Shown here: piece after piece, positions 30,207-63,190 of the stretch
Numbering within the stretch: the stretch's first letter is position 1
Layout of the letters: each line of letters begins with the position of its first letter
Assembly (NCBI GenBank): GCA_038496445.1
Contig: JALMLS010000568.1
Coordinates: 62,001 to 126,000, forward strand
Reading direction: 5' to 3'
DNA: 64,000 bases
From: Trichosphaerium sp. ATCC 40318
Lineage: Eukaryota; Protista; Tubulinea
The notes under the pieces: generated by a model
Databases searched by the model: none
What the model was told of the DNA's origin: nothing
The model's input: only the letters and a program-made list of their open reading frames with translations
Position numbers and translations under genes: made by a program

Positions 30207-31838
30207 TTACTCCTGGCGAGCGAAATTGTTATTTCCAAACTGATTTGGAATAGTCATTATTTTCCTTTTCTTGCGCGGATTTTTTTGTAGTGGTATGCTA
30301 ATAATAACGTTAGCGAGGAACTAAAATCAAAACACGTGCATATCGTTTGCGTTTCTTTTACCCTGGACTTTTTTCGCAATAGGTATATTAGTTATTTTCT
30401 TTTTTTCTTGAGAGTATTTATCTTCCATCTCTTCTAGGGAATCATAGAAATAAATATAATCTCTTTTGTCCACTTTACAGCCTTTGCAGGCTCTACATGA
30501 TGTGACGTATATCTTTATCTCATGAATTGTTTCTCCACTTGGTTTGTGTTCAAAGGTTGCCACGTATGTTCCCGTAAAAGCAAATGCTAGTATAATCTCA
30601 TATTTACTAGGTTCGCGTTCAGGACACCAATGATTTATTAGAAGCCCCTTCATTGAGTATTTCTCGTTCACATCATCGGAGTCGTCACAGCAATCAAATA
30701 GGCATTCATCGAATACAACTTGATCTTTCTTGTATGTTGGATTGCCTGTTATTTTCACTTTGTATTGGCTAATGTGCATTGAAAAGTGTAACTTGATAGA
30801 CTCCCTTTTTTCTAGCGCGTTCGAATACCAACATATCGGTTCCTATTAATCAACAATAAACACAATGGATTTGTTGTATGTACTTGCCTTAACCCTTGAT
30901 TTTGTTACCATCTTTGCACAACCATACTTGCATACATGATATGCTATTGCTTACTTTTAGTACTACAACGGACTTGATTGAGTTCGTACTGTTTGAAAGA
31001 GGATCATAATTGTTTCCGGGTAACGTTAAAGAGTTTGGTTTGCTTTGCCTTTGCTCGAGTGAAAATGATTCAACGGGTAAGTGTGTTGCTTCTTGTTCGT
31101 ATATTGCAATCGTATTAGGTATGGGTAGCTGTGAAACCTGGGTTGGCGATACAGTTTGGCGCTGGTCGCATGTGCGTTCTCTGGAAAGAGGTGCGAACTC
31201 TTCAAGGGCAGCCGGAAGAGCTGACTCATTTTGAGTCGCTGGCAGAACCAACTCTGTCTCCGTAGCTAACTGGTATGCAGCACACTTCTCAGCAAACATG
31301 TCTAGTATTTTTTGAAACTTCGCTTTCTTTTTGTGGTAAATCCAAGCAATGAATTGCACTGACTTGTTTGAGGAAGTCCGAGTATAAATGTCAGCGCCTG
31401 CGTTAGTTAGAGGAGAACTTTTGGACTGAAAAAACCCAGTACCTAGGCGAATGAGGTCGCGTATGGTGTGTAAGTTGCCGACTTTTACAGCAACGTGTAA
31501 AGGTGTATGACCGGCTGAGTTAGTGCTGTTAAAGTTGACGTAGCACTTTTTAAGGATCTCAAAAATGGGCGTTGTGGTCTCCTGGCTCGCTGCCACGTGA
31601 ACTAGAGTGTCTCCAGCTAGATTGATATAAGCGATACAAATTTCGGGCAAAATGCTAGGGATGAGCGCACAACACAGTTTGAACCGTTCTAAATTGTGCG
31701 TATTTCTAGCTAGTATTTCTTCTAGTAATGTAAGTTTGTTGGTATGTAGGGCTCTAAATGCATCAACAACTAATATCATTAATATCATTTTAACGTATTA
31801 CACGAACCCTCCTGACTCAACGCGGTAGTTGCTTCCAT
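30207..31838 (-). CDS. Pair 1 gene A1: ankyrin repeats, uncharacterised beta-rich domain X, NLS-like tail
   Basis: GDTLVHVAA, GHTPLHVAVKVG; domain X VVLK|MVTKSRVK|EPICWY...KGLLINHWCP...YEIILAFAFTGTYVATF...IKIYVTS; tail NPRKKRKI. Confidence 0.8.
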
Positions 31839-31891
31839 TTATGGTTATTTGTGGATTTTGTGAGTAAAAAACTGGTCGAAACTGCTCAAGT

Positions 31892-31910
31892 TCGAACAAC
31901 TTAATAGTTG
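31892..31910. promoter_or_regulatory. Conserved motif in the pair 1 bidirectional promoter
   Basis: TCGAACAACTTAATAGTTG; related to 42125, 51661 and 61337. Confidence 0.5.
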
Positions 31911-31941
31911 TGGAACAAAAAACTATTACTCAAGGAAGTAA

Positions 31942-34900
31942 ATGTATCAAACACCGAAATTGCGTCTTGAACCCACTACCGTTTGTACATTACTTAACTT
32001 TGTTGGAAACGAAACAAGTAAAGAAGTACCCTGTTTGGAACCTCCACCTTGCCTTACACTTGTACTGGGGCTGTTTTTTCTGATTTGACAAGTATTTAGG
32101 TTAATAATGCTGGTATTGATGAGTCGCATTACTATGTGAAATGTACTGTTGTACAGAGGGAAACAAACTGTTTACGTCGTATTGCGCTTCGCGATCCAAT
32201 TATGGCTGACAAGGAACCGGCTCCTAACGTGAAAACCGTTACACGACTGTTCTGTAGAGGAACCGCAACGTTTACAGATATCCAGTTAGGTATGTTATGC
32301 TATTTTTTAATGCGCTAACATTTAAAAGGCCTTGCTACTTACACCCAAAATTTGGATAGAGCATTGACTTGCAGTCTTGAATTTTCTGTAGTCTCGGTAC
32401 GCGAGTTTGAAGGTTGCCACTAAAAAATGTAGAAACAATTTCCGAATTCAGCGCCATTAACAACCGCGATACTGCTTGTAGAAGCGCATGAGTGGATAGG
32501 CTAGTAATTTATCAGCGTATGTGCTAACAACATACAGGACATTCTCTCGATAAACCTTACATTGAAGATATTTCGCATCCGGAAATACTTGTTGGACGCC
32601 AAGAGAGTACGTTGCTTAACGACGGAAATTTATTAATATATTATTAAGCGGCGGTAATCTATGGACGCAACTTCGCGCCACCATCTATTGTTAAGTTCTC
32701 ACATGGTGAAAGCGTGGAAAAAAACCACGATAACAACTCTTATATTCCTAAAATAAAAATGCCTTGTTTTGAGTACGAAACGACCATTGACGCCTGTGTG
32801 TTATCTCGTACGTTTTCTTGTAGCACTTTGAAGTCTAATTGTAAAAAAGTAAATGGGCTATCTAATAAAATAAAGATCCAATACTACTTAGAAGATTCGC
32901 CCTATCGTGATGATTATCAAAAAACTATAGGTATGTGCGACTTCCCGTTTATGTACTCACTTGTTAAAAGGGATTAATGAACAAAAAGGGAATGATGAAC
33001 AATATCTACTCCCCAGTTTCGCAAACAAAGACAAGAAAATGGGTGAATCAGACGATGACACTTCCTGCTCTGCTTGGAACAATAATGTTGGGTCATTTTT
33101 TTCGTTTGAGTATACATTTGGGGCTCTTGGAGCTAAGAGACATTCCAACTGTATGTGATTCAATGATGCTATACATCCCTAAACAAGAACTAGACGGAGA
33201 GACCGCGCTTCATTTTGTAGCAGCCCACGGTACTGTTGACAATACGAGAGTTCTTCTCGCTGAAGGTGCAACGCTTGAAGCGAAGAATAATCGAGGCGAT
33301 ACGCCTTTATTCTATGCTGTAGCAAAACGAAATGAGCCTGTTCTTCAGTTCTTAATTGAGAACGGTACCAAGAAATATAACCTCATTTTGTTTTATGTCA
33401 TGCTTTTACTATCATAGGAGCATCTTTGGAAGTAGTAAACAAGGATGGTATAACACCTATCATGCTTGCATCGCTGTTTGGATACGATCTGGAAGTTGCA
33501 AAGAGTTTAGAAAAGCGTAGGAAACAGGTTTTAAAAGCCGGAGGTGTTGAGGTATGATTTAAAAACTCTGTACTTTGCTGCGCCTATGACCAGTTTAACT
33601 GTTTTCTTCAACAGTTTATTCCTACAAAAATCCTTTCATCAGCATACGACGATGACTCAGTAGGTGGTTGTGTTAACGACTCTTCCGCCACTATCAGTTA
33701 TAGCCCTAAAGAACTTCCCACTTCCCCAAATACAACACCACGTACCGAATCATTTGTTCACCAATTTGATGGTATACATACGCTATACGATAAAATAGAA
33801 CGCGATTGGAACGAGGAGTATCAAGTATGAGATGTGATTGTTTAATGCTTCATTTATTTATTACTAGTCTCTCAAAGAGCAACAATTTAGCGATAAAAGC
33901 AAAGAGCTAGAGAGAACATCGCAATTACGACATTTGACCGAAGTAAAAATTTTTAAATACTTCTGAATGCACGCATTAGCTTATACGAATAGGAATTTTC
34001 TGCATGCGCCACAGAGACTGCTAAGCGAATTATATCAGAAGTGCACTTGCCTGACTCAAGAAAAACTATTAAGCCTGTTACCAAGTACAACCCTCATTTA
34101 TAGCGTTTGGAAAAATACAATTGACTCTCCAGATTTTATTAATTCCTGCTTTTAGTAAACTCGGTGGCGCTGGTGGAGTTCAAGTACGTATCGTATTACT
34201 GTTTCCAAAACGGTTTTTTTAACTTTTTTTGTCTGTTTACAGTTTTTCCACAATTCCATCTTGTTCAAGTTCCCAAGTGATGGTAGAGGGATATATCAAA
34301 ACCAAGATGGTGTAAGAAAGGCGTGTGGACATGAATTGAAGGGTTTAATGTGCTTGATGGACTGTCGTGTTGAAGGTAAGACGAAATAGCATCTTGTAAA
34401 ACCTTAACTTTTCTTTGAAAAATACATACACTAACAACATTTTTCTTGTCAGCGTTATGTTTTCCTTTGATGACTATTATTGATTATCGAGGATGGCGTA
34501 TTCTAGCGGAAGCCATTTTGCCAATTGATAAACAAACTGTTATTTATGGGTCTACAGATGGTGCTCAGACTATTCATAATAGTAATGATGAAATGGACGA
34601 GAAAATGGGGATAGTCGCGAAAATTCTGAATTTAGAACCTGAAGAGGTCTGGAACCGGGATAAGACCAAGAAAACGCGGTTGCATGTCTCTTGTGATATC
34701 GAGGGGCACCTTGGACGAGATCATAGGTTCTACCTAATCGGTACACCTCTTTAACAAGTCAAATTTTTTCAAAAATATCCGTCGTCATTTTTTTGGTTAA
34801 AATCGATCACTTACTCTATTTATTTCGTCTGTAATTTAATGTATGTTTTTTTTATAGATACTGCACGTGTTATGCCACCGGCTGAACCTATAGTTGGTAT

Positions 34901-37699: not shown

Positions 37700-39832
37700 G
37701 CTTCAAAGTTGTTCAAGTACATTCAACAAAAGTAATGAGAGGAACCTAGTAGATAGAGTACGAAGATACCACATGAATATACGATGTCTGACATTGTAAC
37801 ATATGAGAAGTTGTAAATGTGGCCATACAAAATTTGGTGTTCCAGTTATGGACAAGTAAATTTGGAACAGCCATCATTTCTTCTAAAAATAATTTATTGT
37901 CCGTGTCATTCGAGTTTACTAATATTTTCTAGAAAGTCAGTTTCTAGCACTTTTATCAGATCAGCAAAAATTGACACTTCTGTCAAATGGTGTAGATCTA
38001 TCACAATGTGAACTATTTGCGTTACTATGTTGTCCTTCATAGTGTGACTTCAAACAAACTTTGCCTCTTTTCGATTGACAAGCCGGCAGAACTACCAAAT
38101 TCCAAGAATTTCAAAAACTGTCCCAAAAGCGATGCTGCCGTTAACGCAACTAAATTTTCATTACAACAATGATGCACGCAAATCCTTTTAACTGTGCTAT
38201 GCATGTCCAACTAGCAAAGAAAACCTTCAAAATCAAAAAATACAAAAAAGAACAGCTCAACATGTTTCCCACACGTATATATGCGTTCCGTACGACTTTA
38301 CTAAATAAAAGTCTTTAGATATGCGTTTTCTTTTGTTTTGTCCGGTTCGTTTTAGCTGTTTGCTGTTAGCTCTTAACATTTTACAACACTACGCATCCTG
38401 TGCCAATAGTAACAACGACAATTGTCTAGGCGAACACCTTTATTACCTTCTATGACAACATAATGAACAAGTTCTTGGGTTGTTTAAAATAGCGACGCCA
38501 AAAAAAAACAAATGTTAAGTTTATTTTTACAATAGAGTACGGAGAACAAAACAGTTTTGGTGGATTATGAAAGCCATAGCTTAGCTCTAAATGGTTTTGT
38601 ATGTGATACATAATTTTTCTTCGTCGAGGGGTAAAGAGAACGTCCCTTCCATGAGCTCATAACATGCTTTACCAAGAGAAATGATAATGTCTTTAGTTGG
38701 GAAAGTGTGTAATAGTACTCGCTTTCCACGAGTAACGTTGGCATTGAAATGATTGGCCACAAAAGACGAAAATTGACTTACAGTAATAGGTCCCGGAATA
38801 CCTGAAAATCGAACCTCTTGGACTGTAGGGCGGTGAGCCACAGCCGACCAAAGTAGACCATGAATAAAAAAGCAGCTCTCTTTTGAATTGGATAAAGGGA
38901 TGCTGTCAGAACCTCGCACTGTGATGATATAGGAGCTGCTGGTGATGTCCAAATCAGCGTTTTCATTTTGTAGCTTTTCTATGATTATTTCTTTGGAGCC
39001 ATAAATGCGATGAGGCTTCCATGAGAAGCTCGTTAAGTTCTTTTTCAGAAAGAGTATTGAGACCATGCTTGAAAAAGCAGCTTTCTTTCGAGTAGGCTTC
39101 AGGGATGCAGTCAGAACCTCGTACAGTGATGATAAAGGAGTTGTTGGCAAAGTCCAAGTCAGTGTCTCTTTCTTTGTGAAGTTTTTGTAGCTTTTCTATG
39201 ATTATTTGTTCAGAGCCATAAATGTACTGCGAGGCTTCCATAAGAAGCTCGTTTAATTCTTTTTCATTAAAAGTATTTCTATTGATTGCAACAGGAGTTG
39301 TGGGTGTATTTCCGCAGGTGATTTGTTCATCTACAGGTTTACCAAGCAAGCTGATTTTGAACGTTGAAGAATGCTTTTTACCCTCAAGGAGATTCGACAT
39401 TTTCTCCTTCAGGATGAATTACTTTTGTGCAATCTCGCAGCCTTTTCTATTCGTTGCCTCATTTGTTTATTGTATGTAAGCCTTAATTAACATTAGCAGT
39501 TAGCTGAAACTAGAGTAATCTGATAACGTACTGCTTTGTATTTGTTCGCTATCTCACAACCCGTTTTCTGTTCTTCATCCAAAATTTGTGGCAACAAACC
39601 AATATCATCTCAAGCGAAATATCACAGTAGGAGTTTTAAATGGATATTCGCAATAATGTTGGCACAAGGTCGAAGCATGAGTGTAAGTTTCCTTCTCGCT
39701 TTTCTTCTTTTTTGCTTTCCTTGACTCTAATGTGAATTTGTTACTCACTCTCATAAGATCTCAAAACCTCAATATCATGGAAACCCATTTGAAAACCATG
39801 ACCCAATTAGAGTAATTCTTCCTGGAAACGAC
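37700..39832 (-). pseudogene. Scrambled partial duplicate of the 46.7-50.9 kb region (3' end of gene A3 plus fragments)
   Basis: 38143-39060 is near-identical to 48895-49818 but has a 2-bp deletion (ATGAGGCTT vs ATGAGAGGCTT) that shifts the frame. 39065-39540 is a more divergent repeat of the same domain. About 39548-39832 is an inverted copy of about 50651-50935. 37703-37795 matches 46733-46830, and 37803-37880 matches 47432-47510. Confidence 0.85.
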
Positions 39833-40506
39833 ACTTTTCATGTTTGACTAAATGTTCATTGCAACAGTTGACTGGTTTTTTTTTTTTACAGAAAACAAAA
39901 ATGAAATTTGGGTGTGGTAGGTGATTTCTGCTAGCTATCCTGTTACTGTCGTTGTCGGTTGCCAGTTGGTCTTGGTCCGTCGCGTTCAAACGTATGAAAT
40001 GTACATCTTCAGTCAAAAAATGGCTGTTGACGTGTTTTACTCCGTTACAGACGTTTGGGTAAACTTCAGTTGACTTCGTATAAATCAACAACAACCTACA
40101 AAGCTTATGAACAACATGATGAGCAGCAATCACCCACATCCCACCCAAAAATTTCCTAAACCTTTCTTTATTTTCCAAGTGTTCTTGTGTAATATATAAC
40201 AATGCTTGGCGCTGTGCTAGAGCCACAAGACATTTTAGATTCCTCCCAACATCGTTTATAGTTAGTGTTCTTTGTTAGTTGATAGAAGAAAGTAAACTGA
40301 GAGTGTTAGAACTCTAACGTTGTAGCACAACAAAGACCCCTTAACTTTTCTCATTTGCAATCAACTGTTAACTACCACGTGAAGCGTTTATCTTATCACT
40401 GAAAAAACTATGAAACCACAACCAGTCTTCTTTTTAAATTCTTCAGTTCGCTTCAAAAATTAAATAAAGAACAGAAAATGAGTATTCTTTATTTTGTTTT
40501 GAATAT

Positions 40507-42083
40507 TTACTCAACACAAGACAAGGTTTTAGAGTAATGGATGACTGGATTTAGAGCACGTGTCAATTTCCTTTTTTTGGGTTGCGGACTATTTAGTTGT
40601 CTAATAACATGTTAGTACTACAACAAAATCAAGGCACTTACGTATTTTTTGCATTTCTTTTACGAGCCACGTGTTTCTTCTTTGTTATGCTTGTTTTTTT
40701 GTTTATTTCTTGGATGTATTTATCTTCCATCTCTGCTCGTGAATTGCATAAATAAATGTAATCTTTTCTATCCACTGTAAATCCTGCTGTAGCTCGATGT
40801 GACGTGACGTATATCGTTATCAGTTGAACTGGTTCTCCACTTCCCTTGTTGATATAGGTAACAACGTATGTTCCAGGGAAAGCGAATGCTAGTATTATCT
40901 CGTATTCGCTCGTCTCGCCGACCTCAGGGCACCAGTGATGTATTTTTAGCCCCTTTGTTGAGTATTTGTTGTTCACATCTTCGGGGCTGTCGCAACAATC
41001 AAATAGGCAATCATCAAATGTGTCAGCTTTGCGTTTTGGAGTGCCTGTTATTTTCACTTTGTATTGGTTAATGTGGCCTTTAAACTGTAGCTTAATAGAT
41101 CGCCTTTTTTTAGGGTCTACAGCAATTCGATACCAACAAATTACTGGAATCTATCAAACTCAACAATCAACAGCCAGCTGCATTTTGACTAAATACTTAC
41201 CTTGACTCGTGTCATGGTTACCATTTTTACGACAAAAAAGTTTGTTTTGTCGTGCTCTACTTCTTACTTTAGTACTAGAAACGTCTTGAGTACTTCCGCA
41301 CCTGTTGAGTGAGACAAATTACAACGAGAGCCCTTCACTATAAATGGATTTGAGTTGCCACATAGCTGCTCTAGTTCAATAGGGCGCAGAGTGGTTTCTG
41401 GTTTGCTTGTTAATATTGAATTCGATACACCACGTGTGGAAGGCTGTGGTGATACCGTTCTGCTCTCGTGTTCGTCAAGAGGTGTGAGATCATCAACAGT
41501 AGCCGGCAAAACCAACTCGCTCACTGTAAGCTGAGCAAACGCATCTTGAATAGCATTTAAAGTCGGTTTGTTTTTTTTGTGGTAAAGGGTGGCAATGTCT
41601 TGTACAGTTTGGTTTGATTTTGTACGAGCAGAAATATCAGCGCCTGTGTGTATTTAGAGGTTGCAAAAAGAACTAATTTGCACCTTCGCTTCTCAGCTTG
41701 CGAATGGCATCTAGGCTGCCTGTTTTTACAGCGATATGTAATGGAGTCTGGCCAAAAGAGTTAGCGCTGTTAACGTCAACAAATTCACGAAGGATTTCGA
41801 TAAATTTTGATGCATTTTTGCTATTCTCCTTATTTAATGCCACATGAAGTAGAGTGTCTCCAGCTAGCATTACATAAATAAAAACAACTATTGAGAAAAA
41901 CAAAGCGGCCGTACAGGGAAGTTTGAACCTATCCAAGTCATACTTAGTTTTATTTAGTATATCTTTGAGCTCTTCAGGCTTGTTGTCGTGCACTGCTTGG
42001 AACGCTTTTAAAACTAATAATACGTTAGCTTGTCACTATAAGACTGCGTTTTTAATTGTTACACTGACCTTGCATCTGTTCAT
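40507..42083 (-). CDS. Pair 2 gene A2: ankyrin, domain X, NLS-like tail (one splice acceptor looks defective)
   Basis: GDTLLHVAL, GQTPLHIAVKTG; KGLKIHHWCP..YEIILAFAFPGTYVVTY..ITIYVTS; tail PQPKKRKL. Paralogous to A1 with the same exon layout. Confidence 0.75.
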
Positions 42084-42124
42084 TCCGTTAAAATTTTACC
42101 GTTCGAACAGTTTCGCACGTGTTC

Positions 42125-42146
42125 CGAACAACTTAACAGGTTAAGT
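42125..42146. promoter_or_regulatory. Conserved motif in the pair 2 bidirectional promoter
   Basis: CGAACAACTTAACAGGTTAAGT contains the inverted repeat ACTTAA-N4-TTAAGT. Confidence 0.55.
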
Positions 42147-42178: not shown

Positions 42179-45100
42179 ATGGAACGACGATTGCCTTTTG
42201 CGCGTCTCGAAACTCCCAAGAACGTTTGTACTTTGCTTAACTTCCTTGGAAATGTAACATGTAAAGAGGTGCCTTATTTAGACCCTCCACCTCGCATTAA
42301 ACTGGTACTGGGGTTGTAGTTTCTGATTTGACTTGATTTAGCTTGATAGCCTTGTAAACGAGTGGGATTACACTGTACTATGTACTGTTGTACCAAAAAC
42401 AGACCATTTACGTCGTATTACACTTCGTGATCCTGTCTCAGACTCTGGAAATAAGTCGGTTCATACCGTACAGCGACAGTTCGTTAATAGAATCGCAACG
42501 TTTACTGACATCCAGTTGGGTATGTCAACACTATTTTATAACATATTGTTTGCTAACAATTTAAGGCCTTAAGACATACACCCAACATTTTGATCGTGCT
42601 TTGCAATGCTCTCTTGAATTTTCTGTTGTCAAAGTACGTCCGATTTTGGTTGGTTCGCCTCTAAAAAATTTAGAAAAACGACAGCCAGTCAGAGCCAATA
42701 ATAACTATGACACTTTATGTCGAAGCACATGAGTGGATAGGTTGTAATTTATCGCTTACTATGTTGTTAATAATGATAGGACATAGTCTCATGTCGCCTC
42801 ATATTGTCAATATTGCACCTAACAAAGTACGTGTTGGACATCAAGAAGGTAACGTTTGTTACATGATTTTATTGAATATTTAACATATTTTTATAAAGAA
42901 GCCGTAATCTATGGACGTGACTTTGCTCCACCATCTATTGTTTTCTTCACAACCGGTGAAAGTGTAGAAAAGGAGCATGAGTACACAGCATTTATTCCTG
43001 AAATAAAAATGCCTTGTTTGGAGCAACCAGAAGTAGTTTGGGCTCGAGTATTATCTTGTACGTTTTCTTTTGTAAACTTGTACGGTTCTTATGTTTAACC
43101 AAGTAAATGGGTATTCTAATTATGTACCTATCGAATACTATCGAGAAAATACAACATCTCAAAATGGGTATCAACAAACCATACGTGCGTGCGACTTCCA
43201 TAGTTATATTCTCACTTTTTACCAAGAAAATTATGAGAATTACGAAGGGACTTGCATTTACAAAGACGAGACAATGGGCGACTCAAGTATGGAACTTTCC
43301 TTCTTTTCTAAGAAGATAATCTTTTTACAGGTTTTTCGTTTCCAAATACCTTTGCGACGCTAGGACCAACAGGACAATCTTGCTGTATGTTTACATTGTC
43401 GCTACAAATTTCTAAACATGAACTAGACGGAGAGACTGCACTTCATTTTGTAGCAGCCCATGGTACTGTCAACAACGCAAAGATACTTCTAGGCGAAGGT
43501 GCAGCGCTTGAAGCAAAGAATGAACGAGGCGATACACCTTTATTCTATGCTGTAGCAAAACGAAATGAGCCTGTTCTTCAGTTCTTAATTGAGAATGGTA
43601 CCACAAAATAGAATCTCGTTTGGTGATTTGTCGTGCTTTTACTACCATAGGGGCATCAGTAGAAGCGGTAAATAAGGACGGAATTACGCCTATCAAACTT
43701 GCGTCACTGTTTAGATATAGTCTGGATGTTGCAAATAGTGAAGAAAAGCGTGTAATACCGGTTTTAAAAGAAGCAGGTGTTGAGGTATTATTTAAAAAAC
43801 TCAGCAAATTTTGTGGCTATTAAACGTGATTCCTTCAATAGTGTATTCCTACAAAAAACATTACATGCACATACGATAATGAAGCACATATTGCAGGTGG
43901 TTCAGATAGAGGTAAGCACGAGAACAACTTTTTTTGTGGATTTTCATTCTCTTTTAAGATGTTTATCTGGCAACCTATGCTGGCCTGTATGTTGCTATCA
44001 AGATATTTAAGGGACAATTTGCTATTGATTCAAAAAGTGATTTTAGTTTATTTAATAGAGAGGTTATCGCATTAAACTCTTTACATCACGAAAATATTGT
44101 AAAATGTCTCGGATACATTCAAGGTACTAACATATTAACTTTTTATTGTTGATTGTTTTAATATAAGGTGGTGTTACTATGAGAGGTATAACCACAAAGG
44201 TATTGGGTATTGTAACACAGTTTCTTCCTGGCTCTGATTTAGCAAATATGATTGATTGTACAAAATTTTCACTCTATCCAGTACGGGGTGTGTCTCGTTT
44301 TTGCTCGGATATTAAGTTGGTTTGTTTTAGGCAAATGGTTTCAAACAAATACTGAAGATATTACAAGGTATTGCTCAGGGTATGGCGTATATACATAAGT
44401 TAAATGGGGCACATAGAAATCTAACAGCAGAAAATGTAAGACAAAAATAGTACAATCTTTGTTACACATCCTTTTGTAGTTGAGCTATTGACCTGTTTGC
44501 TTAGGTACTAGTGTGGGCAAAAGACAAAGTAAAAATAACAGGTTTTGGACTTTGTATATACGACACAACTGGTGTTAGTAAACTTTCTTCTGGACCTTCA
44601 GTGAAAAAAAGAACTGCCAATACTAGTAGATCTCTCCGTCAATGTGTTGGTACACCAATGTACGTTCAATTCTCTACCGAGAATGCTAGCTATGGTTTTT
44701 CTTTTTATGCTTTTCGTTAAGTCTCTATCAAAGATACATGGCTCCAGAAGTACATACTTTCTTCCCCGACACTTCACTTTCAGCTAAAGTAACAATTAAA
44801 GATTGGCAAATGTACGTACTTGAGCATTATGTAAAGGCTTATAAGAATGCCGTACTAAAGCCCTTTGTAGGGCAGATGTGTATGCTTTTGGTGTACTATG
44901 TTACGAGCTTATAAGCTCTACGCGGGCTTGGGGAGCTTTAGATACAATAGAGCTAGCGTAAGATTTCAGCAATTGAGATAATTAACCCACGTGTTGTGTA
45001 GACGTCTAGTATTACATGGGCACAGGCCAGAGTTTCCTGATGGAGTTTGGGATAGTGAGGATCTAGCAGAAGTGGGAATCTTGGCACAAGACTGTTGGGA

Positions 45101-48894: not shown

Positions 48895-49341
48895 TAACGC
48901 AACTAAATTTTCATTACAACAATGATGCACGCAAATCCTTTTAACTGTGCTATGCATGTCCAACTAGCAAAGAAAACCTTCAAAATCAAAAAAACACAAA
49001 AAAGAACAGCTCAACATGTTTCCCACACGTATATATGCGTTCCGTACGACTTTACTAAATAAAAGTCTGTAGATATGCGTTTTCTTTTGTTTTGTCCGGT
49101 TCGTTTTAGCTGTTTGCTGTTAGCTCTTAAAATTTTACAACACTACGCATCCTGTGCCAATAGTAACAACGACAATTGTCTAGGCGAACACCTTTTGTTA
49201 CCTACTGTGACAACATAATGAACAAGTTCTTGGGTTGTTTAAAATAGCGACGCCAAAAAAAAACAAATGTTAAGTTTATTTTTACAATAGAGTACGGAGA
49301 ACAAAACAGTTTTGGTGGATTATGAAAGCCATAGCTTAGCT

Positions 49342-51608
49342 CTAAATGGTTTTGTATGTGATACATAATTTTTCTTCGTCGAGGGGTAAAGAGAACGTCC
49401 CTTCCATGAGCTCATAACATGCTTTACCAAGAGAAATGATAATGTCTTTAGTTGGGAAAGTGTGTAATAGTACTCGCTTTCCATGAGTAACGTTGGCATT
49501 GAAATGGTTGGCCACAAAAGACGAAAATTTACTTACAGTAATAGGTCCCGGAATGCCTGAAAATCGAACCTCTTGGACTGTAGGGCGGTGAGCCACAGCC
49601 GACCAAAGTAGACCATGAATAAAAAAGCAGCTCTCTTTTGAATAGGATAAAGGGATGCTGTCAGAACCTCGCACTGTGATGATATAGGAGCTGCTGGTGA
49701 TGTCCAAATCAGCGTTTGCATTTTGTAGCTTTTCTATGATTATTTCTTTGGAGCCATAAATGCGATGAGAGGCTTCCATGAGAAGCTCGTTAAGTTCTTT
49801 TTCAGAAAGAGTATTGATGGCATGAGTAGTAATTGTAACTTTTCTCGGATCAGGTTCGGTGCTCCAGATAGTTGTAGGTGTACATCCATTATCGAGTTGT
49901 TCTTTTGTGAGTACAGGTTTACCAAGCAAGTTGATATAGAACGTTGAAGTATGCTTTTTGCCAACAAGCAGATTCGACATTTTCTCCTTCAGGATTTCAT
50001 CTGAATTACTGTTGTGCAATGTCATAGGCTTTCCTGTTCGTTGTCTTTTTTGAGAATTGTTTAAAGGCCTAAAATTAATATTAGCAGTTGTAGCTGAAAT
50101 TGAAATGACGTGCTGGTGTGCATTTTTTCGCTTTTTGGACATTTTCTCCTTCAGGATTTCATCCGAATTTCTTTTTTGCAATGACACAGGCTTTTCTATG
50201 TCTTGTCTTTTTTGAGGATTGTTTGTAGGCCTTACATTACATTAACAAACTGTAGCTTAAGCTGATAACATACTGCTTTGTATTTTTGTTTGCACGACTG
50301 TTGAGGTTGTTTTCTTGTTCTTTTACTTGTTTTTCAGATGTGTAGTATGTTATTTTATCTTTCATGCCTGCGTATTTGGAATTACGAGAGTAAGCGCGGA
50401 TGGTTATCTTAAAAATTTCTTCTTTGGAGTCAACGTGGCTGATGATCGCAGTGTACCACCAACCATGAGCAAGCGCCAATACCAAATTGTATTGTAAATT
50501 TCCATCTGGCGTTATTGTAGATGATTGTCGTTTCTCCAATACTGGATGTCTCCCTTTATTCTTATCGTGTTTTGTGTTTGGTTCGCTACAAGGGAATTTT
50601 CGTTTTAAGTCTTTGGTCTTATGCTTAACCTCACATACATATTTTGTTATGTCGTTTCCAGGAAGAATTACTCTAATTGGTTCACGGTTTTCAAATGGGT
50701 TTCCATGATATTGAGGTTTTGGGATCTTATGAGAGTGAGTAACAAATTCACATTGGAGTCAAGGAAAGCAAAAAAGAAGAAAAGCGAGAAGGAAACTTAC
50801 ACTCATGCTTCGACCTTGTGCCAACATTATTACGAATATCCATTTAAAACTCCTACCGTGATATTTCGCTTGAGATGATATTGGTTTGTTGCCACAAATT
50901 TTGGATGAAGAACAGAAAACGGGTTGCGAGATAGGTGTAAATTCACGTGACTTTTCTTCTTGTATCTTTTCTGGGGGTGACTCAAGTGTCAAATGAGCAC
51001 TGTCTGGTATTTTTCTTGAATTGCATGAACTTGTGGTTTGTACATTGTTTAAGTTTTCTTTGAGCATAGATTGCTCCTCTCTATTTCGTACGTAACTTCT
51101 TATTATTTCCTCGATTTTAATTTTACCAAAAATTCGGGCTGCTGTGGCTGGTGTCAAACCATCAGTTGTAGTTGCATTGACATCAGCTCCTACAATAGTA
51201 AAGTGAGGACAGAATATGATTAAGCTAAAACAATGAGCAGTACCCGCGTGTAAGAGAGTGCTAACGATAGGAACTTCACCTTTCACCGCGGCTACGTGTA
51301 GTGGAGTTAAGCCTCTTTTTTTAGTTTTCGCATTTACATCAAACCCGTTGTTTAACAGTAATATGACAGCGTCATGGTTTTTTCCATTTATCGCCAGGTG
51401 CAGCAACGTTTCTCCATCTTTTTAATGTGTCAGAAACGGGAGAAACATAAAAAGGAAACAAGTAAACGAACCGTCTAATTTTTCGTTTAGAAGCGAACTG
51501 GCACCTAGTAGGTGCGTTTTTTGAATTAATTCCATTGCGCTAAATGCTTATTAGCGGTAGTATGTTGAGTATTTATCGTTACATATCTAGACCCGAAGGG
51601 ACACTCAT
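49342..51608 (-). CDS. Pair 3 gene A3: ankyrin, divergent domain X, extra C-terminal domain of about 200 aa
   Basis: GETLLHLAING, GLTPLHVAAVKG, GLTPATAA; KWIFVIMLAQGRSMS|...YNLVLALAHGWWYTAII..FKITIRAYS; duplicated NSDEILKEKMS linker with KKRK; terminal domain ...IITVRGSDSIP...VRFSGIPG...CITYKTI*. Confidence 0.78.
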
Positions 51609-51660: not shown

Positions 51661-51680
51661 TCGAACAAATTCAGTTAATT
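51661..51680. promoter_or_regulatory. Degenerate promoter motif, pair 3
   Basis: TCGAACAAATTCAGTTAATT, with a second TCGAACAA at about 51728. Confidence 0.35.
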
Positions 51681-51744: not shown

Positions 51745-54700
51745 ATGGAGACCGATGACCGTGAAGATATATTTCCGCTTCCACCGCGCGATTCATCTTC
51801 CGCTACATGGGATGACACAGCGAACACACAGCAGACAAAGATAGACGACATTGAAAATTCATTTCCGCTAGTTGCAATGGATTGTGGGGATATTGAAACT
51901 CCAGCACATTTCTATGGCGGTGAAGTTTCGAAACAGTATTTAACACCAGAACCTTGCGTTTTTTTGGTAAAGACCCTCAATAGTATTAAAACTGACTGCT
52001 TTGTAGACCGTGAAAGAAGATGCACCAAAATGCTACGTACAGTGTACTATTGAAACGGAACCATGGCTATCACCTTTTAAACAATTGAAGCTTAGAGAAA
52101 ACAACAACCCAACGGGTACGCAGCGTTTAAGGGCCTTAAACTACGTAATTAGCTTTTCGTATAACGACAAACATCCTACAGGTTACCATTTTTTTTTGCG
52201 TGACGTTTGGATCACGTGTTTTTATTTGGTTTTTTTTTGAAGCTGAAATTATGTTGCGGGTATAAATATGCGCTTGGATAGCGAAACGAAAGGTTTTAAC
52301 ACGTCCGTCTTCAGTTACGGCCATTCCATTTTCTAGTGCCACCCATGTGCTCTTCAGCAGTTCTACCTACTCTGAATGGACTCAATCGTTAAACCAGTAT
52401 CCTGTACCTAAAAAACTAATCTATTTGTAAAGATTACATTCGAAGAAATTTTGATGCAAACGGTGTTGCCACGTTTGATGGAATTCAATTAGGTACCACT
52501 TACTGGTATTAACAATACAATAAATGATCGTTTGGATAGGAATTAACGTTAGATTGGATGGACATCCATTTAAGTTCGATGCATGCCTCCGGTTTGGTGT
52601 TTTTTTGGTATGTTTTCTATATGATCACATATGTTTCTTACGATCTACTAAAGTGGCATTCGACAGAACCTTATAAGGAATTCTTTGTTAAAGTAACGGC
52701 TCATATGTGGATGGGTTGTTTAGAAACACACTTTGTGACACTTCTTTTGACAACATCATAGGCATTGACAAACCTACAATAACAAGTATCGCACCTGATG
52801 TTATTTTACTTAATTGTGGAATGCGGGGTTAGAAATGAAGAGTTTTGGAATGTTCTTACACCTTCTCTAGGAGCAATTACAGGAAGTAATTTTATGCCAC
52901 CATCTACGATTTACTTTTATACGGAGCGAGGAATACTTGTGCATTGGTCCTGTGCACATGATCATCCCTCGTTATACATTAAACAAGTAGAAATGGCAAT
53001 ACAACGTGAACCCTGCACACTGTACGCAAGAGTAGTATCGGGTATGTCAAATGCTCTCTACGTACATTGCTGATGTTCTGTTTAAGCTAATGGATGGTCG
53101 AAAAACCATGTTGCAGTTCGATATGTTACACACGAACAAATGACTCAAGGCTTTCGTGTTGGAGCTCCTGATGAGAATAAGTCAAGTTCCCCTCCAAGAT
53201 ATGACGTAAGCGACTTCCTGTTACTCGAGTCAGCAGAACAGACTGTGATCCTTCGCAAAGGTTTTGATTACGAATACACACTTTCTAAACTTGGTTCAAG
53301 TGGTAGCAATAGATGTACGTTGCGTCAAGCATATGTCACTTACAGAACTAGACGGAGATACCACACTTCATTTCGTAGCAGCACATGGTACAGTTGAAAA
53401 TGCTGAAGATCTTCTTTCTAAAGGAGCATGTCTCGAATCTCAAAACGAACGAGGTGATACACCTTTATTCTGGGCAGTGGCAGCAAAAAATGCAAATGTA
53501 CTTAAAGTTTTGATTGACAAAGGTACACAAACTTTGATATTATCTCATCGTATTACAAGTTCACTTTTACTTGGTAGGGGCATCAACACAAGCTGTAAAC
53601 AAGGATGGTATGACACCTCGAAAACTTGCATCGCTGCTTGGATATAGTTTAGAAAATGGAAACGCCTATCATAACAAAGATAGCCATGTTAGGAACAAAA
53701 ACGATCAGTGAGTATTAGAAACAATAACACTGCTTATTTTCTATTCTAGGGAAGAAGAGGTTGAAGAGGGCATACCGAAACAAGGTAACATACATTCAGG
53801 AATACTGGTTTTTTCTTGTTTTGACGCCGATTAGTAAAAAGATGTGTTAAAGAGACGCCTACAAGTGTTTTAAAAGCAGCAGGAGTTAAGGTACAGTTCA
53901 AAAGCAGAATATATTTTGTTGTTGTAATCGATTTGTTGCTTCTGAACCTATTACTTCTATAGTTTATTCCTACAAACAACATTGTATCTACATATGATAT
54001 TGAGGCATATCTTGGAGGTGATATATACGGTGGGTTGTATAGTTTTGAGACTTGTTTTATTAACTTGTGTTCTTTTCATAGAGGTGTATCTGGCTGCCTT
54101 CAAGGGTGAGAGAATTGCTGTTAAGATTATTAAGGGATATACTGCCATTGATTCTGAAGGATTTACTGCTTTATTTCATAGAGAGGTTATGACATTGAAG
54201 TATTTACATCACGAAAACATTGTGAATTGTCTTGGATACACAGAAGGTACACATTTGTGATACTATTTGATATAAAGTAACGGTCATAAGGTGATATCAC
54301 TATGGGAAATGCATCGATGAGTGTATTGGGTATTGTAGTAGAGCATATTCCTGGTCATGATTTAGCAACAATCATCGAAATACAAGAAGAATACCTTGCG
54401 AATTTAACAATACTTCAAAAATTTTGGAAATTGGTATCCATACTAAGACTATGCTAATGTGCTAAGTTGTTTTAGCCAAATTTTGTGTCTGAGAGTTTCA
54501 AACAAAGGTTGAAGGTTTTAAAAGGCATTGCTCTCGGTATGGAGCATTTACATAAATTAAATGGAGCTCACAGGAATTTAAGAGCCGAGAATGTATGAGA
54601 CCATCATTACATTTGATCAACTTTAATGTTTTTGTTGTTTAGGTTATGGTACAGCCGGGAGGAAATGTAAAAATTATAGGCTTCGGTTTATCTATGATTT

Positions 54701-55497
54701 GTGGTACAAGTGCCAGTACTATACAAACTACCAGCTCACTCAATGAAACCCATGAGCAAATGGGTACACCAATGTGCGTTCAATATCAACGACAAAGACA
54801 TCTTTTTGCACTTTACCAATGTATTCTTAAGATACATGGCTCCAGAAGTACACGCTCTCTTCCCTGACATTCCAGGAAAAGTAACAATTAAAGCTTGGCA
54901 ACAGTACGTACTTAAGCATGATGTAAAAAAAATTGTTTGTAGGGCGGATATATATGCGTTTGGTGTATTATGTTATGAGCTATTATGCTCCAAACGCGCT
55001 TGGAGTGGTGTTATAGATACAACTGAGCTTGGGTATGAGTTATTCTGCACAATACTGAGATAATTAATGTTGTTTAGACGTCTTGTATTACAAGGGCAAC
55101 GGCCACAGTTCCCTGATGAAATTTGGGAAAGAGTTGAGGAATCAGAACTGGCAATCTTGGCGCAAGACTGTTGGGAGTGTGATCCTAAAGATAGACCTAC
55201 ATTTGTTCATATTATTACTGTTCTAGATTACATTGAGCAGATGTACACGGATGAAGCACAATACTTAAGTGGTAAGTTGGGTTTTATTACAGACTATCTA
55301 AAGTGAAACACTAATACTGACAAAATACAAAAGACCATGATCCACTGGATGCAGTGCTCAAGTTAGCAACTAATAAAGCCACTTGTCAAAAGGAAATACA
55401 AAAATGCAATGCAAAATACCAAAAAGAATATTATGAGTGGCTGGCTACAGAAGCAAGGTACGACGCAAGAAGGAATTTTGATAAAGACACAAGCTAA
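51745..55497 (+). CDS. Pair 3 gene B3: N-domain, IPT/TIG, ankyrin, TKL-type pseudokinase
   Basis: GVATFDGIQLG, VTAHMWMG, PTITSIAP..AITGSNF, GDTTLHFVAAHG, GDTPLFWAV; IAVKII, LHHENIV, AHRNLRAEN, KIIGFGL, YMAPE, DCWECDPKDRPTF. Confidence 0.85.
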
Positions 55498-57113: not shown

Positions 57114-57497
57114 TTAAGTGAGAATACAATCGCGCATTTGTACTTTAATACCAGCAATAATACAAGAATGTCCACGGCATTGGCCATTTCTCTTACACCA
57201 TCTTCTTGAACTGTTAACTTTACCAGGCTCCAAGACAATGTGATCTGGGTTAGTACAAAAGGTACAATGACACAAGTGTGATGCATCTACTAAAGTACGG
57301 GCCAAACCCGGATACCATAAGTAGTTGCCATCAAGCCCTTTGTCAAACAAAGTAATGCCCTTCTCCACATATAGAACTGTATGGGCTAGATTGAAAAGTC
57401 TGCTCATTTTTCTGGTTCTAAATACAGCACGGAGGTACCCTGCACTAGTGGTTGACCCTCTGGTGCACAATTTGCACCCGGTATCTAGAATATACAA
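57114..57497 (-). CDS. His-Cys box (I-PpoI-like, His-Me finger) endonuclease domain, free-standing; start uncertain
   Basis: DASHLCHCTFCTNPDHIVLEPGKVNSSRRWC...C.GH.C fits the SHLCH..C.NP.H...E...N..R..C zinc-binding loop. Upstream GCKLC...GY fits the HNH-type N-terminal strand. Confidence 0.85.
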   Translation of the reverse strand: MYILDTGCKLCTRGSTTSAGYLRAVFRTRKMSRLFNLAHTVLYVEKGITLFDKGLDGNYLWYPGLARTLVDASHLCHCTFCTNPDHIVLEPGKVNSSRRWCKRNGQCRGHSCIIAGIKVQMRDCILT

Positions 57498-59183: not shown

Positions 59184-59662
59184 GAGGCATCCTTTGCCAA
59201 GGCGCATCCAAATCGTCTGTAAAGGCTACGGAGGTAACTGAACAATAGTTGAATTAGCGATGTTCCAAACGAATAGAATACCGAATATATCGCCAAAACG
59301 TAAAAAGTTGGAAATAGTCTACTATATAAACCTATTCGGTTTTTAGGTAAAACTAAGTCACGGTAGGCCTAACCGACACTTTTGTTGTGTGAAATTGTGC
59401 CAGTGGTGACGTTTTTTTGACAATTCGAGCCAATCTTGAGCCCACCACGTGATCTATTTTTTTGCTGGAAAACAAACGTTTTTGTTTATGGCATGAAGAT
59501 ATTCTAATTAGCAAATACCAGTATCACTAAATAGTTCTGACTAGTACAAATCTTTATTGTTACATGAAAAGTTTGAAATCTAAGAAAGTTCATCACTCAA
59601 TCGTCTACTTGACTTCTGAAAGAAGCACTCATCGTTATTTTTTTTATCAGGAAAAAACGTAC

Positions 59663-61103
59663 TTATCCTTCGTTTTTTTACCACCCTGCACTTTTCTTGT
59701 TTTCTACTTGTGTCAGCAATGATAACAAGGAGAAAAAAAGTGCTTACGTATTATTTGAACGTCGCTTACTTTGAGGTTTCTGTTGTTTTTCTATGTTTCT
59801 TTTCTTTTTTTTTTCTATTTCATACTGGGCTTGCATTTGTTCTTCAGAATCGTAGAAAGATATATAGTCGTTTGTGTCCACAGTACACCCTGCTCTTGCT
59901 CTACATGTTGTAACGTATATCGTGATCCACTTGACCGCTTGTGCACTTGGTTTATGCACAAAGGTAGCTTTGTATTTACCAGGAAAGGCAAAAGCAAGTA
60001 TTATGTCATATTTGCTATTTTCAGGGCAAGAGTGATGTATCATCAACCCTTTTTTGGAATACTTTTCATTTAGTTCCTCGGAGCTCTCTCCGCAGCCAAA
60101 GGAGATCTCGTCAAACGAATCCCTTGACAGCTTTGGAGTGCCTGTTATAACAACCCTGTACTCTTTCATGGGCTTATTAAATATGAGTTTGAGTGGTTTT
60201 CTTCTCTTTGGGTCAAGAGCAACTGACTTCCAAAATAATGAAGGTGTCTAGAACGTATTTTATAAAGGAATTGCGTATGGTATTTAACTCACCTTCACCC
60301 TTAGTTGCGTTACCATTATTGCTAGTATGTACTGCCCTTCGCTATACATATAATCTTCACCTGATGTGCTGTTAATTTTTGTTGATGCGTGGCTCTGTAT
60401 ATCTGTTTGTTTCGTTTTCTTGGAGGCTGTTAACAGTTCTCTTGATGATGTTTGCATTAGCAGCAGTCCTTCACAGGTAGCCGTAAATTGTTGCCCTCCG
60501 GTCAAACTTCTAAAGAGACCAGAATGTTCGTTTGGTACCAAGTCACTTCTCGTCACGTGATTTTCAATACCGTATAAACTGGAAAAGTGCTTGTGGATAT
60601 GATCTTTTTCGTTGTGGTAAATCTTAGCTATTGTGGCCGCTGTAAGATGCGCTTTCGTTCGAGCGTTAATATTAGCGCCTGCAACTATTTTAGCGCCTAA
60701 CAAGCAAACTTGGTCGAAAAATGTCGTGCCTTGTTCTATGAGGTAACGAATGATGTCCGTGTTTCCTTTTGATGCTGCTATGTGTAACGGAGTCTCACCC
60801 GATTTATTACTAAGGTTAACATCAATCCTTGTACAAAGCCTTTCAACCAATTTTAAATTGTTGTTTGAAACCGCCACATGTAATAGAGTATCTCCATCTG
60901 GTGTTATGTCAAGAAAGAGCAATTATTGGTCAACTGTAGACGTGCGCTGCGTTTGTACATCCTGAAGTTGATTCGTAGGGTCATTTATAGCGTCTCGCAT
61001 TACTTTGCTGTCTTCATGGACTGCATGAAATAGTTTGAAAGTCTTGAATACGTTAGTCATCTCAAAATTTGCACAGGATTACCCCATCCGTCGTTTCAGT
61101 CAT
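59663..61103 (-). CDS. Pair 4 gene A4: ankyrin plus domain X (3' end approximate)
   Basis: GDTLLHVAVS, GETPLHIAASKG; YILAIMVTQLRVK|TPSLFW...KGLMIHHSCP..YDIILAFAFPGKYKATF..ITIYVTT; basic tail EKKKKR. Confidence 0.8.
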
Positions 61104-61336
61104 CTCGCTTGATAACCATTTCGATATGTATTTTATAAGGTGCTAAGAGCAATTTCGCAGGATGAGGAACTATTTTCGTCAACTAAGTTCAATTCTCTGA
61201 AACATGAAGTTGAGGCCACCCTAATCATAGAACGAGAACAAGATCATCAAATGTAATTGTAAAACAAACGCCAACTAGCTACAGATAATAAAAAAGGTCC
61301 CATAAAAAATACCAATGTCGACGCCTTCAAACATTG

Positions 61337-61359
61337 TCGAACGACTTAAAAAGTTAAGT
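61337..61359. promoter_or_regulatory. Conserved motif in the pair 4 bidirectional promoter
   Basis: TCGAACGACTTAAAAAGTTAAGT contains ACTTAA-N4-TTAAGT. Confidence 0.55.
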
Positions 61360-61414
61360 GACTTAAAAGTAAACTTCATCGCAATACCAACGCGTTAATA
61401 GCAATCTAACACTT

Positions 61415-63190
61415 ATGAATATGGCCCAGATTGAACTCTGCAATCCACTACATGCAGAGACGCTACTGAACTTCATTGGAAGCGATGTGTATGACCAACA
61501 GCCGTATTTGACGCCTGCTCCTCAAATTAAATTGGTATTTGTCGTTTTTAAGTATTTGTTCGGTTGGAGTGACCACATTACTAGAACAACGAAATTGAGG
61601 AGTCGGATTACGTTATTAGGTGCACTGCTACGCCTATACAAATATGCCTCGCATTTGCTCACGCAGGGTGTTACCAAGTGAGGTTTCCTGCTGAAATTAA
61701 TCCTTTGCGCAAAGTTAAACTACGTGGGGAAAAATGTGAAGGCGAGCATGACAATTGTAGCTATATACTTATTATTTTTAGATTGCGTTTACCGAGGTTT
61801 TTGTGGTGGTCTCGCGACGTTTGATAAGCTCCAATTGGGTAACTTGTTATTGACTTTTTGAACACAAGTATTAATAGTTTAAGGTCTTTTGCGTCATCAC
61901 GAAGATGACCAATTTGCATTTCGCTGTGAGCTTCAGTTTGAATTGTTACGGGTTCGTTGTTTACAATTTTTTGGTTGCTCTAAAAATTATGTTTATTTTA
62001 GAAAGATAGACTCGATCAAGTGATAACAGCTGTTTCAATGAATGTTACAGCGCACGCGTGGATAGGTTAGTGATTTGTTATCAAGCATGACTTTATCGCA
62101 TTTAACACATTCAAGGCAAATCACTACTTCCGCCTCGTATTGATTGTATTTCGCATCCTCAAATAATAGTCGGACAGCACGTGACAAGTAAGTTAGACGA
62201 TACTTCTTTGGATAATTCTATTTTTAAGGTGCTATGATCTCTGGGAAAAGATTAGTAGGTCCATGCAAGGTTTTCATCTCAGACTCTGAGACTCAATCAG
62301 TTTCAAATAAAGCCGCTGCAGTTATTACAGGCATAAATATTCCAGTTGAGTATAGTCCAACAGTGAAAAGGGTGAGAGTATTGTGTTGTAAGTAATTGTG
62401 TTTCTGATGAGCACATGTACTAATTTTGAAACAAGTGAATGGGTACTCGAATGAAATAGAAGTCCAGTACATTGCATTACCATCACCATCACTGTCTAAC
62501 AACACAAGTAAACGTGATCAAAACATGTTATTCATATTTACACGGCATAGATTTCGTTGAGGAGGAAACACATATCGATTATTTGAAGTGTATTTCTGTC
62601 CATAGTAATTTCGCGTTTGACTATACTTTCAGTATCCTGGGGCCTATTAATCAAAGTCAGAGTGCGTTTATCGATATTGAAACATAACTAAACATAGCTA
62701 GATGGAGAGACTGCACTTCACTTTGCAGCAGCCTATGGGACTGTAGAAAACATAAAGACTCTTCTTACAGAAGGTGCATCCCTCGAAGCTACTAATCACA
62801 GAGGTGATACTCCTCTATTCTATGCTGTGGCAACAAAAAATATTGATGTTCTTAAATTCTTGCTGGCTAGCGGTGCGAAAATATAAATTAAGTGCCTCTA
62901 AATGTTAATGGCTCATTATCATTGTAGGAGCATCGATTGAAGCTGTAAACAAAGACTTTCTATCACCGCCCAAAATCGCGGCATTTTTGGGGTATGATAT
63001 CCATGCTTACTGTGAGAGTTATAACACCAAGAATATCAGCTCTCAATATGCCCTCGTGCAGCATAAAGAAACTGATAATTTAATCACATGCATTGAAGAG
63101 TTGAATAATGAGACTGCCGTAAAGAATATTGCTACTAAATTACTATCACAGAAAAAAAGCACCATTATCCATGGTAGATTATCCAAATGA
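61415..63190 (+). CDS. Pair 4 gene B4: N-domain, IPT/TIG, ankyrin, no C-terminal effector
   Basis: TLLNFIG..PYLTPAPQIKL, GLATFDKLQLG, VTAHAWIG, PRIDCISHPQIIVG..AMISGK, GETALHFAAAYG, GDTPLFYAV; stop at 63188-63190. Confidence 0.8.

Follow-up and report, generated by a model that had tools for sequence, protein, structure and literature searches.

Plant paired NLRs such as RRS1/RPS4, RGA4/RGA5 and Pik-1/Pik-2 are encoded by divergent gene pairs located in duplicated clusters, in which one partner carries exchangeable extra domains. Pseudokinases are known to serve as decoys in plant immunity. In Dictyostelium, tgrB1 and tgrC1 are duplicated head-to-head genes with immunoglobulin (Ig)/IPT domains, whose shared promoter coordinates transcription and whose products are matching partner proteins (PMC13648343). 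Here we describe an array of four head-to-head gene pairs, each consisting of a gene A and a gene B, in the marine amoeba Trichosphaerium sp. ATCC 40318 (GenBank assembly GCA_038496445.1, contig JALMLS010000568.1, positions 62,001 to 126,000, forward strand). This stretch of 64,000 nucleotides, further referred to as the window, was analysed computationally, and all coordinates given below are counted from its first letter.

The array resembles the plant pairs in having divergently transcribed partners in a duplicated cluster and exchangeable domains on one of them, in this case B, while it differs from them in that A and B are devoid of NB-ARC, TIR, CC and LRR domains, as judged by Pfam scans of about 55 pieces of open reading frames (ORFs) and exons. 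[quoted passage not shown] Tgr proteins, however, are transmembrane and contain several extracellular IPT/Ig E-set repeats, whereas A and B have no hydrophobic segment and at most one IPT-like domain. Unlike Tgr, they carry ankyrin repeats, tails resembling a nuclear localisation signal (NLS) and a pseudokinase or CLU-TPR module, and no sequence similarity between the two systems was detected. The locus follows a genomic design that is already known, here assembled from orphan domains and reshuffled ones.

In the explanation that we favour, and which we hold to be reasonably probable, the array stems from tandem duplication of a co-regulated cassette of two genes that is specific to the Trichosphaerium lineage, B being a modular scaffold and A its small, probably nuclear partner. 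Long ago the cassette would have undergone at least three duplications as a unit, and four working copies would have been kept. As the bidirectional spacer of 95–311 bp carries a conserved family-specific motif, TCGAACRAMTTAA, A and B are most likely co-transcribed and would act in the same pathway. B may be a soluble scaffold of Rel/NFAT-like order (beta-rich N-domain, probable IPT domain, 2.5 ankyrin repeats), with a C-terminus acting as a putative exchangeable output or sensor module. The ancestral module would be a catalytically dead TKL-type pseudokinase, as in B2 and B3; B1 would have taken a CLU-TPR module in its place and B4 would have lost it. A would be a small soluble protein combining a 2.5-repeat ankyrin module, an orphan Ig-like domain and the NLS-like tails, and its most plausible role is that of a partner of B, serving in the nucleus as adaptor or regulator.

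Four copies of one gene pair

The array is made of four tandem units of approximately 10 kb, all in the same orientation, each composed of a minus-strand A gene placed head-to-head with a plus-strand B gene. The window is AT-rich (GC content 34–39%) and its introns are very short. All four pairs sit where the initial annotation of this DNA had placed them, and the ATG-to-ATG distances of 103, 95, 136 and 311 bp for pairs 1, 2, 3 and 4, measured between predicted starts, agree with the gaps reported there. Gene models were obtained by combining a splice-aware dynamic-programming script with paralog conservation and manual three-frame reading; the starts of A1–A3 and of all four B genes are predictions. 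Domain X in the list below is a domain of about 140 residues encoded by one exon. The genes are as follows.

A1, about 30229–31838, minus strand: N-terminal helix, 2.5 ankyrin repeats, linker, domain X, basic tail and small last exon; partly curated model.
A1 domain X exon, 30336–30842, minus strand: 62–65% identity to domain X of A2; Pfam Ank matches are present in A1.
A2, 40507–42083, minus strand: domain X exon at 40642–41150, last exon at 40510–40600 with PKKRKL; transcript peptides P0001 and P0012.
A3, 50240–51608, minus strand: ankyrin repeats and a divergent domain X subtype at about 50274–50725; the end is possibly at 49342.
A4, 59580–61103, minus strand: six exons, stop codon at 59580–59582; transcript peptide P0002.
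A4 exons, minus strand: 61083–61103, 60946–61042, 60730–60897, 60293–60678, 59748–60247 (domain X) and 59583–59703.
B1, 31942 to about 37400, plus strand: curated exons 31942–33551 cover the N-domain, probable IPT domain and ankyrin repeats; the 3' end is approximate.
B2, 42179 to about 46966, plus strand: curated exons 42179–43784 cover the N-domain, probable IPT domain and ankyrin repeats; pseudokinase at about 43842–45195.
B3, 51745–55497, plus strand: curated exons 51745–53707 cover a longer N-terminus, N-domain, probable IPT domain and ankyrin repeats; pseudokinase at about 53963–55271.
B4, 61415–63190, plus strand: N-domain, probable IPT domain and ankyrin repeats only; about 435 amino acids, manual model.

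A2 and A4 are real, transcribed and spliced genes, since across spliced exons both are 100% identical to MMETSP0405 transcript peptides (Trichosphaerium sp. ATCC 40318, taxid 498012, Amoebozoa). The complete A4 peptide (P0002, 431 amino acids) maps exactly to the six exons from 61103, by which the start and all five introns are confirmed. The A2 3' fragment (P0001/P0012) maps to the last three A2 exons and confirms the last two introns.

Curated B introns are of the GT-AG type and 36–55 nt long, with the exception of one GC-AG intron in B1 (32500–32537) and one intron of 317 nt in B3. Their positions and phases do not differ among the four copies, and the initial annotation had already noted that most intron positions persist; one extra intron is common to B3 and B4 and one more is found in B2. 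A further GC-AG intron, in A4 (60679–60729; G/GCACGA...TGCAG/GC), is confirmed by P0002. The intron lengths of the locus fit the short introns of the published draft genome, in which the mean intron is 75 bp and a gene contains 8.7 introns (PMC10521059). The 317-nt intron of B3 (52116–52432) stands at the same position as a 46-nt intron in B4, and its extra sequence may be an insertion.

In an all-against-all blastp comparison of stop-free segments, domain X exons matched each other with E values of 1e-53 to 1e-64, and the B N-terminal and ankyrin exons with 1e-13 to 1e-40, a paralogy well beyond what chance would give. At the DNA level, pairs 1 and 2 are 71.5% identical across 1.7 kb. All four descend from a single ancestral pair by copying and do not represent four independent pairings. 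Synonymous divergence (dS), calculated according to Nei and Gojobori, amounted to 0.72 for A1–A2 and 0.66 for B1–B2, all other comparisons being saturated (dS > 1.3 or undefined). Amino-acid identity ranks in the same way in both genes, with 1–2 above 1–4 and 2–4, and these above any comparison with copy 3. The A and B histories, whose comparison was raised in the initial annotation, are therefore congruent on both counts. Because of the matching dS and identity ranks, we conclude that A and B were duplicated as a block. Each copy has been kept under moderate purifying selection: the ratio of nonsynonymous to synonymous divergence (dN/dS) was 0.11–0.60 across A and B comparisons, and at this whole-domain level no diversifying selection was seen.

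The two genes of a pair have one more feature in common. Between ankyrin repeats 2 and 3, all A and all B genes are interrupted by a phase-1 intron, which lies in one and the same Gly codon (in A4 it is the transcript-confirmed GC-AG intron). As its position and phase are identical in A and B, this suggests a common origin of their ankyrin modules, perhaps via an ancient inverted duplication.

The spacer motif and the rearranged flanks

When both strands of the 64-kb window were searched with the 13-bp pattern TCGAACRAMTTAA, allowing no more than one mismatch, exactly four matches were obtained, one in each A/B spacer and all on the plus strand. They end 38–72 bp upstream of the B ATG.

Pair 1, 31892–31904, plus strand: TCGAACAACTTAA, between the A1 ATG at 31838 and the B1 ATG at 31942.
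Pair 2, 42124–42136, plus strand: CCGAACAACTTAA.
Pair 3, 51661–51673, plus strand: TCGAACAAATTCA, with a second TCGAACAA at 51728.
Pair 4, 61337–61349, plus strand: TCGAACGACTTAA.

The best 13-mer common to the four spacers had 4 mismatches in total, as compared with 7–12 in 300 shuffled sets, and of the four occurrences of the shorter core TCGAACAA in the window, three are located in A/B spacers. Relative to pairs 1 and 2, the synonymous sites of pairs 3 and 4 have reached saturation; a spacer free of constraint should by now be randomised, and for this reason we read the motif as constrained, as a putative family-specific regulatory element of a bidirectional promoter. It is this motif that speaks chiefly for a probable co-regulation of the two genes of a pair.

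Outside the gene pairs, the following rearranged segments were identified.

37700–39833: partial recent copy of 46733–50934 with 94–100% identity, located between B1 and A2 and partly inverted.
38590–39418 and 49345–50241, minus strand: two copies of an ORF named 'C', an intact orphan with internal repeats and no Pfam match.
39549–39833, against 50934–50650: inverted piece of the A3 linker.
63577–63821, minus strand: degenerate inverted B4 fragment that comprises exons 8 and 10 and lacks most of exon 9; 73–78% identity in self-blastn.

The first of these spans the B1/B2 3' flank, the spacer and the region 3' of A3 at 94–100% identity, whereas the gene pairs are only about 71% identical. It is a recent segmental duplication or gene conversion. 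An exact look-up of ORF 'C' and of other ORFs in a protein collection returned no entry; a predicted 43-nt intron may join ORF 'C' (49342–50230) to A3. The fragment at 63577–63821 is a pseudogene fragment lying tail-to-tail with B4, directly downstream of it. Past the end of the window the array may go on, or a palindromic remnant may close it. Because of the partly inverted copy and the degenerate B4 fragment we conclude that the cluster is still undergoing rearrangement.

On its left side the array is bordered by an RNase T2-like exon (…WAHEWLKHGTCA…; 29259–29507, plus strand), which is convergent with the A1 3' end. Between B3 and A4, the spacer harbours an ORF at 57117–57497 (minus strand) with a Pfam match to zf-His_Me_endon (E 6.4e-11), the zinc-binding loop of His-Me finger endonucleases; this may be an inserted gene derived from a mobile element or a virus.

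Architecture of the A and B proteins

A proteins consist of a short N-terminal helix, 2.5 ankyrin repeats recognised by Pfam, a linker, domain X, a basic tail and a part encoded by the small last exon. The linker is variable (100–150 residues) and has a conserved MVTxxRVK motif at its end. NLS-like motifs are found in the tail or last exon, for example PKKRKL in A2 and KKRR in A4. The precomputed Pfam annotation of the A4 transcript lists Ank families only. The last introns of A2 (40601–40641) and A4 (59704–59747) are both phase 2 and start with GTAAG, so that their retention would create an immediate stop (ACG TAA) and remove the last exon, in A2 the one with the strongest NLS-like motif (PKKRKL). 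This may be a trivial effect of the donor consensus or an intron-retention switch.

A profile search with domain X among 1.84 billion representative proteins yielded five true relatives, every one of them a Trichosphaerium transcript. As three of the five (P0003, P0004 and P0005/P0011) are A relatives encoded outside the window, the A family has at least seven members, some of them beyond this array. Apparent kinship with bacterial InlK/PKD repeat proteins in the profile search was dismissed as noise, a beta-hairpin pattern being all that they have in common. AlphaFold2, run on the four-sequence alignment, modelled domain X as a beta-sandwich with one helix (predicted local distance difference test, pLDDT, 72). 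Fold searches with this model gave nothing but generic sandwiches of the Ig V-set or filamin type (Foldseek against PDB, E ≥ 0.026; VIA wide; Atlas, template modelling score < 0.5). Since its relatives are confined to Trichosphaerium and its fold matches are generic, we call domain X a predicted orphan Ig-like domain. Its similarity to the B N-domain and IPT domain was also assessed and none was found (hhalign probability 0.6%).

Domain X of A3 is divergent, with 17–22% identity to those of A1, A2 and A4. In a maximum-likelihood tree A3 grouped with the unlinked P0005 (support 100/99), while A1, A2 and A4 were placed together (92/99), beside P0003 and P0004. The grouping of A3 with an unlinked relative argues that pair 3 is an old, separate subtype.

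In B proteins, exons 1–4 encode a beta-rich N-domain of about 150 residues with the motifs PYLxPxPxIKL, YxVxCT, ATFxxIQLG, FxFxCxLxF and VxAHxWIG. The next 100 residues or so, encoded by exons 5–7, show in the four-way alignment an IPT/TIG-like pattern (PxIxxIxP, IxGxNFxPPS, LNGxSN). Exon 8 is a variable acidic linker. Exons 9–10 code for the ankyrin module of 2.5 repeats, which is kept in all four B and whose B1 exon matched Pfam Ank_2 with an E value of 3.6e-11. Searches with the N-domain and IPT region used contiguous single exons as queries, which makes their sensitivity low. With such queries, Pfam detected no RHD, CG-1, TIG or other DNA-binding domain in B, and an exon-6 profile run against 177,635 PDB sequences recovered only the TIG domain of NFATc4, with a non-significant E value of 1.3.

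The order of a beta-rich domain of about 150 residues, an IPT-like domain directly after it and then ankyrin repeats is that of NF-kB p105/p100, NFAT, CAMTA and Spt23/Mga2. Single-exon queries, of low sensitivity, gave no Pfam match to RHD, CG-1 or TIG and no PDB match for the N-domain. B differs from these proteins in its C-terminus, where a pseudokinase or CLU-TPR module takes the place of a death domain, of IQ motifs or of a membrane anchor. At the corresponding Y-x-V-x-C-T stretch, B does not have the Arg-rich recognition loop known from Rel proteins. The Rel-like position of the N-domain in front of the IPT domain is a resemblance only.

The maximum Kyte-Doolittle hydropathy over 19 residues was 0.87–1.18 in curated B cores and 0.92–1.59 in A transcript peptides, the peak of 1.59 falling within a P0004 ankyrin helix. 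Neither the curated B cores nor the transcript-derived A sequences contain a hydrophobic segment of the kind that typifies membrane spans or signal peptides. A and B thus appear to be soluble, and given the ankyrin repeats and NLS-like tails we read them as intracellular.

The C-terminal part of B differs from copy to copy, as the initial annotation had observed: a pseudokinase in B2 and B3, CLU-TPR in B1 and none in B4. In B2 and B3 it has a protein-kinase fold, identified by fragments of Pfam Pkinase and PK_Tyr_Ser-Thr that follow in the correct order over several exons. B2 reads GAHRNLTAEN and ITGFG and B3 reads GAHRNLRAEN and IIGFG, which means HRN for HRD and GFG for DFG, while the VAIK Lys and the APE motif are retained. 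We take this module as an old, conserved pseudokinase, predicted to be devoid of the catalytic Asp and the Mg-binding Asp, because the synonymous sites of B2 and B3 are saturated and the dN/dS of the preceding B core is about 0.4.

Integrin-linked kinase (ILK) is a scaffold made of ankyrin repeats and a pseudokinase. B2 and B3 likewise place ankyrin repeats before a kinase fold that has lost both its catalytic Asp (HRN) and the Asp that binds Mg (GFG), whereas unlike ILK they have the N-domain and IPT domain in front; the likeness is drawn at the level of architecture.

B1 retains the first 13 or so residues of the pseudokinase module (FIPTKILSSAYDD; FIPTK...), followed by unrelated sequence inside the same exon (33615–33824), and DNA similarity between B1 and B2 ends within this exon, at 33655. 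Further downstream lies a CLU domain (PF13236, E 6.8e-28, 98.5 bits with a cutoff of 24; Pfam match at 34453–34740), then an eIF3_p135 match (PF12807, 22.3 bits with a cutoff of 22) and TPR-like helices. The same succession of CLU, eIF3_p135 and TPR-like helices is found in CLUH/Clu1/TIF31, whereas B1 lacks the CLU N-terminal domains and is a predicted fusion behind the N-domain–IPT–ankyrin core and the 13-residue pseudokinase relic. It appears that B1 swapped the pseudokinase for CLU-TPR within an exon. B4 ends approximately 60 residues past the ankyrin repeats and has no C-terminal module.

For B2 the model predicts a further C-terminal extension of about 500 residues, including a long exon at 46117–46591. 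The proposal that this exon encodes a second domain X was not confirmed (hhalign probability 0.6–3%; the single-sequence AlphaFold2 model had a pLDDT of 52 and was unusable).

Explanations of the pairing

Passive tandem duplication is the best-surviving alternative to the co-regulated cassette, and we regard it as possible, if on the whole unlikely. According to it, two unrelated neighbours with a chance bidirectional promoter were copied as a block of about 10 kb, and their products have no functional relation. A and B are of equal age and have congruent relationships, exactly as block duplication predicts, and head-to-head genes are common in this compact genome, the initial annotation naming examples (MRPL27/F-box, ANKRD40/DDX60, C2-Rab/RNase T2). 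Moreover, the spacer accounts for only 1–3% of a unit and would seldom be struck by rearrangements as few as those observed. On the other hand, the spacer is still short and keeps a common 13-mer despite the synonymous saturation between pairs 3, 4 and 1/2, and both genes are intact in all four units while the 3' flanks were rearranged. The shared 2.5-repeat ankyrin module, which is unusual, with its intron identical in position and phase, makes A and B look like related genes and not random neighbours. If A and B should prove functionally unrelated, the locus would simply serve as a clear illustration of how a block is duplicated in the compact genome of an amoeba.

Several points weigh against the co-regulated cassette itself. 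The persistence of the pairing is explained equally well by passive block duplication, and four copies of one ancestral pair provide no independent sign of selection for linkage. The spacer motif was spotted by eye prior to testing and could serve, or drive, only one of the two genes. No B transcript peptide was retrieved with an ankyrin-exon profile padded with A4, which was swamped by generic ankyrin proteins, or with two profiles padded with an orphan ORF, poor profiles whose blanks weigh little. The B models, the B starts and the B1 fusion are predictions, though very consistent over the four copies. Exon queries revealed no N-domain relatives in Pfam, PDB (exon-2 profile) or Atlas, and the IPT label of B, which we consider probable, rests on the non-significant NFATc4 TIG match and a reading of motifs. 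From these data we infer that A and B are co-regulated, that they are partners, that they act in the nucleus and that B may bind DNA; functional coupling of the A and B proteins is plausible.

The initial annotation had proposed a functionally coupled two-protein nuclear switch, possibly for pathogen sensing. A co-regulated pair is supported by the spacer motif. A coupled nuclear switch is possible, and the NLS-like A tails fit its nuclear part. Pathogen sensing is not supported: neither an NLR-type domain in the roughly 55 pieces scanned nor a whole-domain dN/dS of 1 or more was found. A stronger version of the switch, in which B would be a Rel/NFAT-like factor gated by its exchangeable module, A its obligate cognate partner in matched cassettes specific for the Trichosphaerium lineage, and B might feed back on TCGAACAACTTAA, seems to us unlikely. 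If true, a modular system for paired sensing that does without NLR domains would have evolved independently in Amoebozoa.

A paired immune sensor and helper by analogy with plant NLRs, with the B modules as integrated decoys or sensors and A as executor of a nuclear response, is less likely again, and we regard it as improbable. The layout from which the initial annotation drew this comparison stands: the array is a birth-and-death-style tandem cluster of divergent pairs, duplicated as units, with swapped modules at the B C-terminus, and pseudokinase decoys offer a precedent. Recent local rearrangement and pseudogene fragments also suggest birth-and-death dynamics, and heavy giant-virus gene traffic into this amoeba has been reported (PMC10521059). 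However, the absence of NB-ARC and NACHT stated in the initial annotation was borne out, and Pfam scans of the ORF and exon pieces (A1–A4, B1–B4 and spacers) found no AAA, TIR, CC, LRR, death-fold or other immune signalling domain either. The diversifying selection that such a system might display was not seen at the whole-domain level (dN/dS 0.1–0.6), the four copies show only two module types and one loss, and transcripts of A2 and A4 are present in the transcriptome of an ordinary culture. With no immune domain and dN/dS below 1, the analogy is one of layout alone.

Least probable of all is a pair that would recognise self/non-self or cell state in the manner of Dictyostelium tgrB1-tgrC1, since A and B lack both a signal peptide and a transmembrane segment, are made intracellular by their ankyrin repeats and NLS-like tails, and contain a domain X and an N-domain with no sequence relation to any other family, even if both systems belong to the Amoebozoa and have the same cluster anatomy of head-to-head pairs that were duplicated, shared promoter and Ig-like/IPT-type domains (PMC13648343), and Trichosphaerium is multinucleate and polymorphic with a complicated life cycle (PMC10521059).

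The locus offers an orphan Ig-like domain which in 1.84 billion proteins was found solely in this species, a dated replacement of a predicted pseudokinase by CLU-TPR whose junction is still visible inside an exon, and a short putative promoter element common to four pairs that can be tested. Divergent partner-gene clusters underlie both plant paired NLR immunity and kin recognition in Dictyostelium. If the co-regulated cassette is true, the Trichosphaerium array would be a third, unrelated case, assembled from ankyrin, Ig-like and pseudokinase parts, and would indicate that the genomic design for matched protein pairs arises repeatedly.

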